In this document: one piece after another, positions 4,951 through 11,679 of the stretch | Layout of the letters: each line of letters starts with the position of its first letter | How positions within the stretch are numbered: the first letter of the stretch is position 1 | DNA from: Chlorokybus atmophyticus | Lineage: Eukaryota; Plantae; Mesostigma and Chlorokybus algae | Reading direction: 5' to 3' | NCBI GenBank assembly: GCA_009103225.1 | Contig: RHPI01001737.1 | Coordinates: 508,286-572,285, forward strand | DNA length: 64,000 nt | Program-made: the position numbers and the translations under genes | The notes under the pieces: model-generated | What the model was told of the DNA's origin: nothing | The model's input: only the letters and a program-made list of their open reading frames with translations | The model's database searches: none

Positions 4951-6759
4951 CCGCCGCGTGGAGCCCCTGCTGCTGTACCGTGACCTCAGTCAGTGCCAAG
5001 CTGGTACTGTAGCACAAGGGGCCTGCAAAAACATTGCCTGCGTACGACTGCTGTGTGTCACGGTCACCGCGTGCGGTTCAAGGCTTACACAGTGTCAAGT
5101 TGACTTTTTGAAACCTTAAAGCCTTCAGTTAGTTTTTTTGATAGATCATTGAACATCAGAGGCAGCTTGTGTATTGGGATGGTAGGGTGTGGACACTTGC
5201 TTTGCCTAGGTCTGGAGGGAGGCAGACCATGCACATGGGCTCCCTGAGATCATGTGCATGTAGGTGACAGCGGTCATGCGCGCCAATCGTGGCTAGAACA
5301 CCAAGTGATGGCATGTGTGCAAGCCATGCACACATGCACGTATACATGTAGTCGTCAACATCGTCGTGCATGCTGTGGTTGCTGGCGCAGCTCTTGTCTC
5401 CACCTGAAACCTCCTCCGCTGGTGCTGGTGTGATTATCATGACTGTCTGCTAGCACAACTGCCTCCTTGCCATTGCATTCCCATGGCTGCGAAGGCATGC
5501 GCAAAGTCTAGCAATCCAAAACGCCCTGTTAGCCGTTGCGTGGTTATTGGATTGTTGGCGGCTATCGCAAGCTGGTGTTGTGCACGTTTGCAATAGTACC
5601 ACACCTACAGCGGCGAATGATGCACTTGCGTGGCGTAGGAGGCAAGCCAACAATGCACCCACAAGCAAGCAATGCTATGGTGGCTGTATGCTACGCTGTA
5701 GTGGCGAAGGTGAAGCGTTGCCCGTGCGCTTGGAGAAGGATAAGACAATATGCTAGGGCGTATGTGCAGAAAAGGGGTATGCTGCTATGCGTGTCACATG
5801 TGCATAGCGTATAGGAATCCACGATAACACTTTATGCCAAGCACGCAAAACACCCACAGCACTACGTACTTTACTCAACACCACCACCACCACCTCTAGC
5901 CTACAGGGGCTCTACTCGACTCTACGAAAATGCAAGTAGAAGTGCGTGGGCAATGCAGGCAGGGGGGAGCAGCGGGCTTCAATCGCAACAGAGCAGAGCA
6001 TGTGCATGAAGTCAAGTGCAGCGCGCCACTCATGCAATGCCTCAACCCATGTTTGCTGGTACATATTGCTTGGGGGCTCCTTTTTTTTCACTACACTACC
6101 GTACATTGTTACAGGCTTTCCCAATAAAAGGTTATTTGCAAACATCGTGAGATTAATGTATCGTGCATTATGTTCTCCATACTTGCCTTGCATAGGCAGT
6201 AGCAGTACAATGATCCAATCAAAGCATGCATTGGTGGAATACTGCACCTCAGCATAAGTGTGAGACAACAGGGCAGGAAATTACCAAATTAAGCTGAAGA
6301 TGCAAGCCGTAGAAATACAGTACATGCATGAGCTGATGGTGTTGTGGAAGGTGGTACGCATGGAGTGACAGGTGTTGGCCAGTTGGCCAACACCTTTCAC
6401 AGCTGGCCAAGACCTGGCTCCCAAAAGACCCGTCCAACAGTTCAGCCAGTTGCGTCCAACAGTTCAGCCAGGTGCAAGTGGAGTGTGCGAGAGCCCCTCT
6501 AGACAACATGTGGCAAATGCTTTGCAAGTTGCAACACCATCAAAGGATGTACATGCAGACTACACAACGGCACAAACAGCTTGCCTGACTATCTGCAAAA
6601 ATCCGTATCTACATCATCCCACTGTCGTCAGCAGCTAGTGGCGTAGATGGCAACAATCAATACTTGGAGGCAGCGCCGTGTTTATTCTTCCTCCTAGCCC
6701 GTTGAGGCGTTGTCCGCAAGCACGCCACCGCAGAGTATGTGTGCTTGTGGAGGTGGGTG

Positions 6760-9134
6760 TCAGCTATGGTACTGCTTGCTGCCATACTCAAGTTTTTTCA
6801 TCTTTTGCAGCTCATCTCCATGCGCAATGCCCTCTTCCACATAGCACAGCTGTAGGTACAACCGGTCAGCAAGTGAGGAACCATTACTACTTGATGCTGT
6901 AGACTCACCTGATATTCAGGCTTGCGCAGCGTGTGAATGCCACGTTTGAGCATGCTCTGCCAACCTGAGCGTTGCTTTAGTTTGGAAACAATTTCCTCCG
7001 TCCTCTACAAAATAGTTGACTTAGATTATGCAAAGAGACAGGAATATCAAGCAAGTCTCAAACAAGGGCACCTCTCCTGATGCGCTACCTGTGCTGGATC
7101 AAGCACAAGAAGAAAGACTTCCTCATCATACGACAGTTTTGAGCGTCGCTTCTGAATACCAACAATAGTACGCGAATGGCCTTGATGCTGGAAAAAGATG
7201 GGCCTGTGCAAATGGAGTACGTCAGTCAGCCAGGAGTCCATATGCGATGAAGTGTTCAACAAAGTAACTTACGGCCTGTTTGTTGAAACCACGCTTGAGG
7301 ATTGAGACCCGGACACTTGAGCAGAGACTTCAGATGTAAAGTAATCCCACACCCACTGTATCAGCGCTGTATGCTCCTGGTTTCCCCCGCCCTGCATGTG
7401 TTCCTTGGCTGGCCTGTCCATCCTGGCGTAGTCTCTGCTATCCCCACCGTCCTCCAGCGCAGACTGCAACACGTGAGCGAAGCTCAGAACTGCTGCCACT
7501 CACAACGGCAAACATGATTATAAAATGACATCTTACTCACCTGCATACAAGCGCCACAAAGGTCGAAGTCCTGTGCAATGTTGCTGCGGAACCGTGGCCC
7601 AACAATGGGGCATGTGCCACAGCCGTCACATTGCACATGCGGGTGCGCAATCGAATTCCTGCTGTTCTCAGCAGAATTCACGTCGCCGCTGCCACTCTTT
7701 GGAGCCGTCAGCTTGAAATCCACAATATTGACACGTATGCCAAAAGAGCGCAGCAGTGCGGCACATTCGGTGCTACCAATCCACTTGTGCCTGCCTCTAA
7801 CAGCCCAGTCTAGTTGGCGGGCTCCAACCTCGTCAAAGCCACGTGCCCAGGCCAGCTCCAGCCAACTTTGCAACGCCGGGATTGCTGGCACAAACCCACA
7901 ACCACCAAACAGCGCCTCCCTGTACTCGGGGCCTCTCTGTAACAAGTGCGAGCTCAATATCTGGACATTGCGCCACCCGCAGCCCCAACCCGTATCATTT
8001 CCGCTGGGAGCATCCTCTTTGTTCGAGCTGTGGCTGTGCTGCAGATCCCCTGCCCATAGCAACCATCAACTCTTACAATCATGTCCATTGTTCACCTGGA
8101 CAGAAAGTCAATACTTCACATAAATGAACTTGCACCTGATAAAAATGTGCGGCAGTGGTTGGAGGATTGCTTTTCAGTCTCTAAACACCAGCGAAGTAGA
8201 TTCATGAAACCTTCAGGCACTGGAAAGAATGTGCAGGGTTCCTGCACGCTCACAAGCCGAGCCATATCTCCGCGAAACTGCTCAGCCTCGTCCTCTGTGC
8301 CAGGTAGTGGATGTGCCCCTTGTCCTCCATGCCGGCCGTGCTGTGATGCCCGCCGTCTCCGCATGGTATCCACTTGTATTGAGTGCGCGGATCCCCTGCC
8401 TTGTGGCTTGGAAGACTTCTCCCCTTCAACCTGCAAGCCAACATGTATACTTATAGTAGTATAATGTGATGCTACTTCTGACGTCTAGTGAACTCATGCT
8501 GCCCCACTAGTACTCTTAAGTATAATTGCACTCTCAGCTTGTAGCAGTACGCCTTGCACTGGTGACTGAGTGAACGACTTGACCACTTTAGGCCAACTGC
8601 ACCAATCTGTTCAGCTTCTAGGTTGCAACGTGCAAAACTGACAAGCAGCAAATGAGCATCAACTTGACAAAACCAGTTTTTGCAGGTTGCTGAGACGCCG
8701 GCAAGATCATGCTAACAACAGCGTGTGTGAGTGATAGCTTGCGGAGCAATTGCGCTGAGCGTTTTGTATTGAATAACACGAAGCAGCTTGGTACAGTGGA
8801 CACGTAGTTGCTTGCATGAAACATAGCAACCTAACAGCATTCAAGTCAGCGACGGCAAACAACTAACCTCGGCAGTTGGTGCTGAAGCCTGTGGCTCCGA
8901 CGCACCGCCATATGGATGAGCGACGCTGCTGTTACTGGTGTCACCCTTCTCACTGTCATACTGCTGCTGAAGGGCGCGCGCCATGGCGGCATCATTGTGC
9001 ACATCATCGTGAAGTCCTACATCAAAGTGTTCCGCCACGTGGCGCTCAACGTCCTGCACGCTCCCCTCTGCGCCGCATACCGGGCAGGTGGCGGCGGCGG
9101 ACGGGGAGGCAGGAGCCTGACCCCTTTCGCCCAT
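6760..9134 (-). CDS. ZUP1: ZUP1/ZUFSP-like deubiquitinase (peptidase C78) with N-terminal C2H2/UBZ-like finger and an internal ZZ finger; multi-exon
   Basis: DTGWGCGWRN (catalytic Cys ~7980), KWIGSTECAALLRSFGIR, PIFFQHQGHSRTIVG, LLVLDP, LRKPEYQ|LCYV. N-terminus has CPVCG..VERHVAEHF. GT-AG exons join in frame to the stop at 6760. An alternative ATG lies at 9140. Confidence 0.92.
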
Positions 9135-9164
9135 GCGCATGCACGGGGCAAGCCCCACTTTCAC

Positions 9165-9558
9165 TCACTTCTTGGGTGGCCGGGAGGAGGAGCCTCCGCA
9201 GCTTGGACAAGGCGCCGCTTGACCCTTAACCTTACCCGGAACAACACCAGCGCCGCCGCAAACCTGCAACCGCCGCAATCACGCCTTTCACATTGCCTTA
9301 ACCTAAAGAGCAACTCCAATCGTACAGAAGCATGCTCACAACCATCCCACCGTCCTGCAGACGGAGAAGGAACAGCAAGAGTGTGACGACCTGGACAACG
9401 CTGTGCAGCAAGGCTTACACACGGACCTGGCAGAGGCGGAGGTCGCGGCGCTGCCGGGCGGCGATCCAGGCGTCGACCTTAAAGGCGGAGACTGCGGAGA
9501 CGGCGAGGGCGGCGCCAACAGCGAGACCAGCGAGCTCGTTGGCCGTCCAGGCCGCCAT
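9165..9558 (-). CDS. Small DnaJ-type zinc-finger (CxxCxGxG) membrane protein, 2 exons (9558-9427, 9263-9165); not shown in the ORF track
   Basis: Manual splice gives MAAWTANELAGLAVGAALAVSAVSAFKVDAWIAARQRRDLRLCQ|VCGGAGVVPGKVKGQAAPCPSCGGSSSRPPKK*. The GT..AG intron 9426-9264 is phase 0. The protein resembles plant plastid DnaJ-related small proteins. Confidence 0.8.
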
Positions 9559-11679
9559 CACCCCAGGTTGTTCTCTGCCCAGGCGGGCTAAGCAGCCACC
9601 GTGCAGACGAAGCCCGCCACGTCACGGCTGCACAGCGTCACGCTTTACGGCACTGCGGCGGAGCCTCGTCCGTCGATCGCCGTGGCACGGATCCGCCGCT
9701 GAGAACCCGACGGCTTCAGTCATCGCGAGGCGCCAACCGCGTCATTGATTGGAGGCTTAAACAGGTAGTATTCATTGACTGTTTCAATGTGGAATGAATC
9801 AGCCGTGCCTCTGATTGCAGAACGGTCTCGTTCATTCTGCGAAAGAATCTGTAAACCGTACGTTGGAAGCAGCGTCACGCTTGACACTGCGTGACGCAGT
9901 GTGACGCCATATCCGACGACGTGACACTGAAGCAGGCTGGTGTCTCTGTCCTGGAAGTGCACTGTACCTCAGGTGCTCGGTGTGGGCGGCAGCGCTGCCG
10001 ACAGCCGGTGCGTGATTGCAAGGGAGTCTTGTGTGAGTGCTTTCAGCCTTACCTCTGTAATGTTAACGGGGCGGCGGCCATATGCGTGTGCTGATAGCTA
10101 GCTAGCTGTGGTCGCTGCCCTCTGACAACGTGCTGCATGTCATACAGCTGCTGCAACCTCCGGTCAGCTGTTGCCGATCTATTACGTCGACAGGGAGGTT
10201 ACGGCTTCATGCTAATTAACTGCCTTCTTTGCGCCCTCATCTCACTGAGTCAACTGGTGCGCAGGCAGTCCAGGCCAGTCTACATCAGTCGCTGAGGGCT
10301 TGCCGTTTGCATGTAATGTCTAGCGCATACCATCGCATTGCGCTCTTGAAACTCAATCGAGATCATGTCACCTTGTCTAGTTCCATCGCAAGGGGCTTGC
10401 TGTCTGCATACACCGCGTACAACATTCGCATTGCCTCTTTCTCAGCCACGTAAAAGCGAATAAGCCTGCTTGAGGCATTGCGTGCAAGGAACATCCATCC
10501 ATATAGAACAGAGGAGCCATGTGCAAAAACGCTGATATGTGCCAGTGTGTATCAGCAACAATGATAGAATGACTCTACACAACATGGCACACAAGCAAAC
10601 ACGTGCGGTAGGGGCCATGTTGTTGACAAAGCTGTGGCGGTGGAGCTGAGGAGTGGGGTAGGCAGGCAACAGCAGGCAATATTAGGCAGCAACAACAGGC
10701 AGTAGTCACGACGTCCCCCCCCCCCTTCCCAATAGGCGGAAGTGCGCTAGGCCCCACAGGTAGTACAGCGTGGCAAGGAAGCAGCTACGAGCTCCTCACC
10801 TAGAGAAGCGCCACATGGGTTGCAGCATGACGTCAGCTGCTCAGCACACTGGTGGCACATTCACTGCACGCACCACGCACATATTGCCCACCACACACAT
10901 ACACTGCACACACGTCATAGCTGCTGCCAGCACCGCTCCACCATCGTCGTCAATCATTGCTCACTAGGCAAGTACTTTGTCCTTGGCAGGCAACAAAACC
11001 AGCAACCGGACTGTCAAGCGACCATCGTGTGCCATAGCACCACCCATATGATTGGGTTGCATATGCAGGTATGAAGCCCTTGCCGGAAAGCATGCCATAG
11101 ACTACAAACAATGCTTGCATACTTAAATGGAGTCAGGTATGTACTCAGTGTTGCAGGGCATGTCTCTGCATACGTGACAGACCGCTGTGCTCAGCTGCAC
11201 ACCGTGCTCTATAAATTTGCTCGGCCAGAAAAACAGGGACTCCATGGTCTGATGATGTTACATTGCACAATGATGCTATTATGTGATCCGGGCATTCATT
11301 GTCTGTCTGTACAAAAGGGATTTGCTACTATGTGAGTGAAGAGTTCAGTATAGACAAGACACTGTTGCTTTCACTGGTACTAAGAGCCCACAACCGTTGC
11401 CAACCCACATGGTGGTTCAACTACACAGTTGTTATGCCGACTGCTCGTTGGCAAAACAACTGCGTAAAAGAACCAGCAAATTCAAGTGTCTAAGCAAGTT
11501 CTCAACAAAAACTTGGATGCATAGTCCTGCATGCGCAGAAGGCAACACGCTCACAGCACTGATCTACGCGGGCCTGCCAGCAAGTATGGCCATACAATGC
11601 CATGCATAACCTCTGTGGTGAAGGCCACTTGCACACATTGCAGCAGACACTGCCTAACCCTCACCCCCAGCACATAAGC

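Follow-up and report, generated by a model that had tools for sequence, protein, structure and literature searches.

A candidate bicistronic nuclear mRNA for a small zinc-knuckle protein and a ZUP1-type deubiquitinase in Chlorokybus atmophyticus

Two closely spaced genes on the minus strand

In a stretch of 64,000 nucleotides (nt) of DNA from the streptophyte alga Chlorokybus atmophyticus (contig RHPI01001737.1, positions 508,286 to 572,285; hereafter the window, with positions counted from its first letter), two open reading frames (ORFs) follow one another closely on the minus strand. The upstream frame, ORF1, is a small two-exon gene for a predicted zinc-knuckle protein, and the downstream frame, ORF2, is a seven-exon gene of the ZUP1 deubiquitinase type. 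An earlier note, made from the letters of the window alone, had proposed that a single messenger RNA (mRNA) encodes both, and it is this proposal that we followed up.

ORF2 occupies seven exons on the minus strand (8868..9140, 8136..8430, 7541..8049, 7273..7463, 7089..7203, 6909..7004 and 6760..6849, from first to last), which together give a coding sequence (CDS) of 1569 nt and a protein of 522 amino acids (aa). Every intron runs from GT to AG, the start codon is the ATG at 9140 or the one at 9134, and the stop codon is the TGA at 6762-6760; exons 2 (with both its joints), 4 and 6 are given by the gene model and by the RNA contigs described below. An exhaustive search with exon 3 led to an annotated C. 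atmophyticus protein in EukProt, jgi/Chlat1/7421, and the 522-aa model is identical to it. Exon 3 carries the catalytic motif GWGCGWRN of Peptidase_C78 together with an inserted ZZ finger, both of which were matched there by Pfam (1.2e-24 and 5.4e-10, respectively); the Peptidase_C78 match (PF07910) reached 142 bits against a threshold of 29.1. Exon 5 supplies the catalytic-histidine motif HQGHSRTIVG. The closest solved structures are those of human ZUFSP/ZUP1 (6FGE and 6EI1; E 8e-37), and the GWGCGxRN cysteine motif and the QHQGHSRT histidine motif of ORF2 both align with 6FGE. Exon 1 encodes a CPxC...HxxxH zinc finger and a helical stretch resembling UIM/MIU elements, and its CPVCG...HVAEH segment aligns with the CPxC...HxxxH finger of the homologues. 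In the alignment, plant and algal homologues start 2-28 residues ahead of this shared finger, which indicates that ORF2 would be complete when read from 9140 or 9134. Judged by its domains and motifs, ORF2 is thus predicted to be a complete ZUP1/ZUFSP-type cysteine deubiquitinase, in agreement with the identity that the earlier note had assigned to it. Human ZUP1/ZUFSP, a K63-specific deubiquitinase, has the same cysteine and histidine motifs and likewise an N-terminal C2H2-like finger; unlike the human enzyme with its several fingers, ORF2 has one, and a ZZ finger lies inside its C78 domain. This ZZ finger (window 7541-7650, minus strand) splits the C78 domain in an insertion common to the plant and algal homologues and not found in the human enzyme, and several of these homologues have a recorded Pfam ZZ match or are named 'ZZ-type domain-containing protein'.

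ORF1 starts at the ATG at 9558. Its first exon (9427..9558, minus strand; 44 codons) encodes a hydrophobic helix, a basic stretch and the first cysteine of the zinc knuckle. An intron of 163 nt follows (9264..9426, minus strand; GT..AG, phase 0, with 3 ATGs inside), and the second exon (9165..9263, minus strand; 32 codons plus the TGA at 9167-9165) completes the motif CQVCGGAG and adds CPSCGG and a basic tail. The spliced frame has 76 codons (76 aa; 231 nt including the stop) and is open only once the intron 9426..9264 is removed. Because this intron cuts the first cysteine motif between LCQ and VCGGAG, ORF1 is absent from the six-frame ORFs; the earlier note had given an intron as the reason, and the RNA contigs contain the corresponding joint. 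In the 76-aa product, CQVCGGAG and CPSCGG are separated by 12 residues (CxxCxGxG-x12-CxxCxG). A motif scan of the whole window, ~128,000 codons over six frames, found C..C.G.G only 2 times, and the paired CxxCxGxG and CxxCxG knuckle is far beyond chance. The hydrophobic helix covers approximately residues 8-28, with hydropathy up to 1.76, and the G+C share at third codon positions (GC3) of exon 1 is 0.84, versus a G+C content of 0.54 in the intron. Our best reading of the product is a 76-aa protein with a predicted membrane anchor and one zinc knuckle resembling the DnaJ cysteine-rich (CR) domain.

Where the two genes meet, the minus strand reads CCC AAG AAG TGA GTG AAA GTG GGG CTT GCC CCG TGC ATG CGC ATG GGC. 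The ORF1 stop (TGA 9167-9165) is followed 24 nt on by the ATG at 9140-9138 and 30 nt on by a second ATG at 9134-9132, on the same strand and at the distances reported in the earlier note. The inter-ORF spacer (9141..9164, minus strand; 24 nt) contains neither an ATG nor a stop codon and is in frame with both ORF1 and ZUP1. The two ORFs each begin and end at a start codon and a stop codon that they do not share, and no splice joins them.

RNA contigs across both genes

RNA contigs from the runs X1 and X2, which come from two independent studies, and from a third run, X3, were mapped to 5600-10900. Two of the runs contain 0.41 and 0.35 of the words sampled from the 4-kb stretch, which is the share expected from exons alone. 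X1 yielded one contig of 1911 nt that matches 6651..9536 in eight pieces with 0 mismatches, and X2 one contig of 2029 nt that covers 6569..9566. In both contigs the ORF1 intron and the six ZUP1 introns are removed exactly as modelled, and both run unbroken through 8865..9261, so that the spacer stands together with the stop of ORF1 and the start of ZUP1. The ORF1 splice joint (9261>9425, skipping 163 nt, with the cut at +2) is present in contigs of X1, X2 and X3, and the spacer is unspliced in all three. The length of the X2 contig is consistent with the sum of a leader, 231 nt of ORF1, the 24-nt spacer, 1569 nt of ZUP1 CDS and a 3′ untranslated region (UTR) of ~190 nt.

Run X3 is recorded as the same organism and differs by ~5-15% per exon, or roughly 7-9% overall. 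Cryptic species have been described within Chlorokybus, with splits dated to 24-76 Ma ago (PMC8611356), and we infer that X3 represents one of them. One X3 contig spans the spacer (8922..9209), and a second carries the ORF1 splice joint. At window 8868-8921 (minus strand), X3 has 51 unlike letters in place of the low-complexity Ser, Ala and Pro segment with which ZUP1 exon 1 ends; this end is apparently a fast-evolving linker from the zinc finger to the protease.

At the 3′ side, the contigs end at 6651 (X1), 6569 (X2) and 6533 (X3). The 3′ UTR (6569..6759, minus strand) contains an AATAAA at 6686-6681, 74 nt past the ZUP1 stop, which is the sole AATAAA or ATTAAA on the minus strand from 9600 to 6300. 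The X1 contig ends 30 nt past this putative poly(A) signal; both TGTAA sites are intronic. At the 5′ side, the end of the X2 contig, at 9566, lies 8 nt upstream of the ORF1 ATG, which gives an assembled leader at 9559..9566 (minus strand). The 5′ leader is apparently short, at 8-19 nt in assembled contigs, which cannot fix the RNA end. Directly 5′ of the ORF1 ATG lies a putative promoter region (9560..9960, minus strand), where TGACG/CGTCA sites cluster more densely than anywhere else in the window: it has 6 of them in 400 nt, a count that is the highest among 1272 sliding windows, whose mean is 0.91. These sites may be bZIP-type promoter elements. The cluster and the contig ends at 9566 and 9559 are indirect evidence for transcription starting upstream of ORF1. 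Within the cluster, palindrome-like GCGTGACGC/GCGTCACGC copies occur at 9635, 9872 and 9889. No RNA contig covers 9567-10146. Farther out, at window 10147-10362 and ~600 nt 5′ of ORF1, a separate low-depth X2 contig of 216 nt maps with 6 differences and has no convincing ORF.

The junction could also be read as a fusion. Since the two ORFs share a frame and the spacer is stop-free, read-through of the UGA would join ORF1 to ZUP1, and such a product, made in this way or through an unseen splice, would be a membrane-anchored deubiquitinase. The ORF1 stop lies within GTGAGT (9168-9163), a consensus splice donor, which would favour a fusion as well. This donor is, however, unused in all contigs, and all three runs keep the spacer; splicing to the closest acceptor (9118-9117) would remove an intron of 52 nt and leave ZUP1 in the wrong frame. 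Moreover, about one third of ORF pairs are in frame by chance, and an N-terminal module like ORF1 is found in 0 of 198 retrieved ZUP1-like proteins (150 search matches plus cluster members). We regard a fusion as the least probable of the readings considered here. Its splicing form was rejected, with no joint in the spacer in any run and the 52-nt intron out of frame; a splice that fuses the ORFs, which the earlier note had named as evidence that would tell against it, thus occurs in no contig. A broader version, in which one mRNA would give three products (the small zinc-knuckle protein with its anchor, ZUP1 in free form and, at a low level, a UGA read-through fusion), also seems highly improbable to us. 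Were it true, the fusion would tether a K63 deubiquitinase to the membrane, and the bicistron would be a half-way gene fusion.

Routes to the second frame and competing readings

On balance, we consider it probable that the locus produces a bicistronic nuclear mRNA on which ZUP1 is reached via leaky scanning. Transcription would start slightly 5′ of 9566 and yield an mRNA of ~2.0 kb, from which seven introns would be removed and whose end would lie ~110-230 nt past the ZUP1 stop. Ribosomes that recognise the first AUG would make the 76-aa ORF1 protein, whereas those that pass it would meet no AUG for 252 nt and would start at the ZUP1 AUG; the very short leader would aid such scanning. Short leaders have been linked to leaky scanning (PMC11892635). 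In the spliced RNA there are indeed 0 AUGs across the 252 nt from the ORF1 start to the ZUP1 start; AUG-free windows of 252 nt make up 0.4-1.3% of the 64 kb, and none occurs in the ZUP1 CDS. In the spliced model the ORF1 stop lies upstream of six exon junctions, and coupling to nonsense-mediated decay (NMD) would therefore be possible.

Several observations weigh against this reading, and the first concerns the contigs. Assembled contigs are not single molecules, and they show neither RNA ends, nor levels, nor internal start sites. Of the earlier proposal of one mRNA for both genes, what stands is the continuity of spliced contigs, from the two studies and from X3, across the stop, the spacer and the start; that a single molecule carries both ORFs we infer from this continuity. 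In X3, furthermore, the ORF1 piece and the ZUP1 contig were assembled apart, at depths of 288.6 and 621.5, respectively, and this split, together with the limits of contigs, makes an additional internal ZUP1 start site possible. Under such an explanation there would be two overlapping units, and a shorter mRNA with its start within ORF1 or the ORF1 intron would serve for ZUP1, either in addition to the long RNA or in its place. Overlapping transcripts do get merged in contigs, the X3 contigs break at 9209-9213 with the ORF1 piece at about half the depth, and one TGACG site lies inside the ORF1 intron (9384). Nevertheless, a second variant of low depth (contig 5) occurs exactly where the X3 contigs break, which is a common assembly artefact, and depth drops towards 5′ ends in any case. 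RNA depth over ZUP1 intron 1 is only a trace, and an mRNA for ORF1 alone would need a poly(A) site within ZUP1, where there is no AATAAA, no ATTAAA and no exonic TGTAA. We therefore judge two overlapping units to be distinctly unlikely.

The start codon of ORF1 stands on the same side. It reads GUGAUGG, with G at -3 and +4, which by the general rule is a good AUG context and not a weak one; this rule, rather than a Chlorokybus-specific consensus, was the standard applied, and a weak context is a tendency only. The first ORFs of published bicistrons tend towards weak AUG contexts (PMC11892635). Nor is the absence of AUGs significant, since ~60% of shuffles of ORF1's own composition are AUG-free as well (P(0) ~0.6). 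ORF1 is poor in A and T, so its shuffles lack AUGs too, and the AUG-free run thus fits leaky scanning while not being independent proof of it. The strong-looking context would suit a variant in which the same bicistronic RNA is used and ZUP1 is translated by reinitiation after ORF1, and AUG depletion is compatible with that route too (discussion in PMC11892635). From the general knowledge of eukaryotic translation, however, an ORF1 of 76 codons and a spacer of 24 nt are unfavourable to reinitiation, and leaky scanning was the route favoured by in-vivo experiments with two green algae (PMC11892635). Reinitiation in place of leaky scanning accordingly appears very unlikely.

RNA structure at the junction was considered separately. 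The fold of the spacer region is no better than that of shuffles (z 0.09), nor is that of the ORF1 start region (z -0.11), and a search of 5500-11500 for Rfam families gave no match; an internal ribosome entry site (IRES)-like or other structure was rejected. A scan for bacterial promoters and terminators was empty and is irrelevant to this locus.

The identity of ORF1 supplies the remaining points on the opposing side. With the full ORF1 as query, Pfam gave sub-threshold matches, to Anti-TRAP (E 0.0022, 18.4 bits versus a cut-off of 32) and to DnaJ_CXXCXGXG (PF00684; E 0.034, 14.9 bits versus a gathering threshold of 32.7). A protein word search with the full 76 aa returned no relative at E <= 10, exon 1 as query shares no words with any protein in the collection, and exon 2 matched entries of PDB, NCBIfam and the ESM Atlas at chance level only. 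ORF1 is missing from the protein collections searched, including the Chlorokybus set that contains ZUP1. The upstream protein had been called DnaJ-type and plastid-related in the earlier note. The first label holds for the CxxCxGxG and CxxCxG motifs, which are present, and not for the Pfam matches; the second found no support, for the hydrophobic helix begins at about residue 8 and leaves no space for a transit peptide. Small plant proteins with DnaJ-like zinc fingers include BSD2, LQY1 and PSA2. Like the DnaJ cysteine-rich domain, Anti-TRAP and BSD2-type proteins, ORF1 has a CxxCxGxG followed by a CxxCxG at hairpin distance. In contrast to them, it has only two cysteine motifs, enough for one zinc centre, where PF00684 has four CxxCxGxG repeats and two centres; its Pfam scores are about half the gathering thresholds, and it lacks a transit peptide. 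Finally, no ORF1-like ORF or CxxCxGxG was found upstream of ZUP1 at nine other loci (Symbiochloris, Chara and seven RNA or metagenome contigs, within L001-L011).

These points would suit a reading in which ORF1 is a long upstream ORF (uORF) in the ZUP1 leader that throttles ZUP1, perhaps through NMD, with no separate role for its peptide. ORF1 has no homologue that we found and is unannotated, it would act as an effective barrier given its good AUG context, conservation of the pairing does not extend beyond Chlorokybus, and the spacing is within the range of uORFs. On the other hand, 76 codons are long for a uORF, the pair of CxxCxGxG and CxxCxG with a hydrophobic anchor is very unlikely to arise by chance, and the GC3 is coding-like. 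The diverged X3 sequence points the same way. X3 keeps the ORF1 frame with no indel, and in exon 1 it differs at 9 of 135 positions (6.7%), while its ZUP1-only exon pieces (6909-8421) differ by 7.7-14.6% and its 3′-terminal piece, which holds the 3′ UTR, by 10.7% with indels. Upstream, the X3 similarity ends 1 nt before the ORF1 ATG (9559), with 18 unlike letters beyond, and so begins practically at the start codon. Such divergence suggests that ORF1 is under constraint as a coding sequence, and together with the rarity of the motif and the GC3 it suggests that ORF1 is genuine. These signs of coding are indirect, and translation of ORF1 into a protein is a prediction. We hold the uORF reading to be unlikely, and continue to favour the bicistronic mRNA with leaky scanning.

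Occurrence of the pairing and comparison with known systems

As far as seen, the pairing of ORF1 with ZUP1 appears to be limited to Chlorokybus. Conserved adjacency had been suggested as a check on the proposal, and its outcome is divided: the same layout is present in the diverged Chlorokybus of X3 and absent upstream of the nine other ZUP1 homologues.

Polycistronic nuclear mRNAs of green algae have been described by Gallaher et al. 2021 (PMC7896298) and Duenas et al. 2025 (PMC11892635); in chlorophytes, long reads have documented nuclear mRNAs that are exclusively polycistronic. The published algal bicistrons have a short, AUG-poor ORF1, a short spacer and a short 5′ UTR (PMC11892635; PMC7896298), and Chlamydomonas and Auxenochlorella are the algae in which the leaky scanning model was put to the test (PMC11892635). 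The present locus resembles the published bicistrons in its small ORF1 of 231 nt and in its spacer (24 nt here, versus a median of 40 nt in Auxenochlorella), as well as in the separate start and stop codons, the AUG-free run before ORF2, the apparently short leader and an ORF1 missed by annotation. There, too, ORF1 can be a small membrane protein (TOM22, OST4), as is predicted here. It differs in its host, a streptophyte (Chlorokybophyceae), in its gene pair, which is another one and apparently lineage-specific, in an AUG context of ORF1 that is not weak, and in being known from assembled contigs alone. The chlorophyte precedent invoked in the earlier note is matched by the published bicistrons, while the host itself is not a chlorophyte. 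By this comparison, the ORF1-ZUP1 locus seems to be another instance of the green-algal arrangement of two proteins on one mRNA.

Within the Streptophyta, a further comparison is offered by CDC26_TTM3, a conserved bicistron found in land plants as well as green algae (cited in PMC11892635, where its coupling to NMD is discussed). It shares with the present locus a bicistronic mRNA within the Streptophyta, a short first ORF and an ORF1 stop upstream of exon junctions; unlike it, the present locus encodes unrelated proteins, and the deep conservation of CDC26_TTM3 contrasts with a pairing not found beyond Chlorokybus. Full-text literature searches for bicistronic mRNAs in streptophyte algae found no report. 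Within the Streptophyta, Chlorokybus belongs to the lineages farthest removed from land plants, and a well-supported case in it would fit the presence of leaky-scanning bicistrons in each of the two branches that make up the green lineage. If the reading is right, the locus would show that new bicistronic pairs still arise in single lineages, and it uncovers a probable protein-coding ORF that the searched protein collections do not contain. With an ORF1 of 231 nt and a spacer of 24 nt, it would also be a compact natural cassette for relating start context and leader length to the ratio of the two products.

Two of the loci examined for comparison have features of their own. In a plant or algal RNA contig from SRR31511108 (L001:325-1100), the ZUP1 homologue has a 5′ leader made up of about nine direct repeats, each of ~80 nt and decayed. 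Each repeat copies the gene's segment of start codon and zinc finger (CCATGGGnGAGCCTGAGAAG...AAGTGCCC), and many upstream ATGs result. In another alga (L005/L006:4001-9770), the ZUP1 homologue lies tail-to-tail with a UCH-type (USP) deubiquitinase gene; more ORFs with UCH and DUSP domains lie beyond it, giving a small cluster of deubiquitinase genes.

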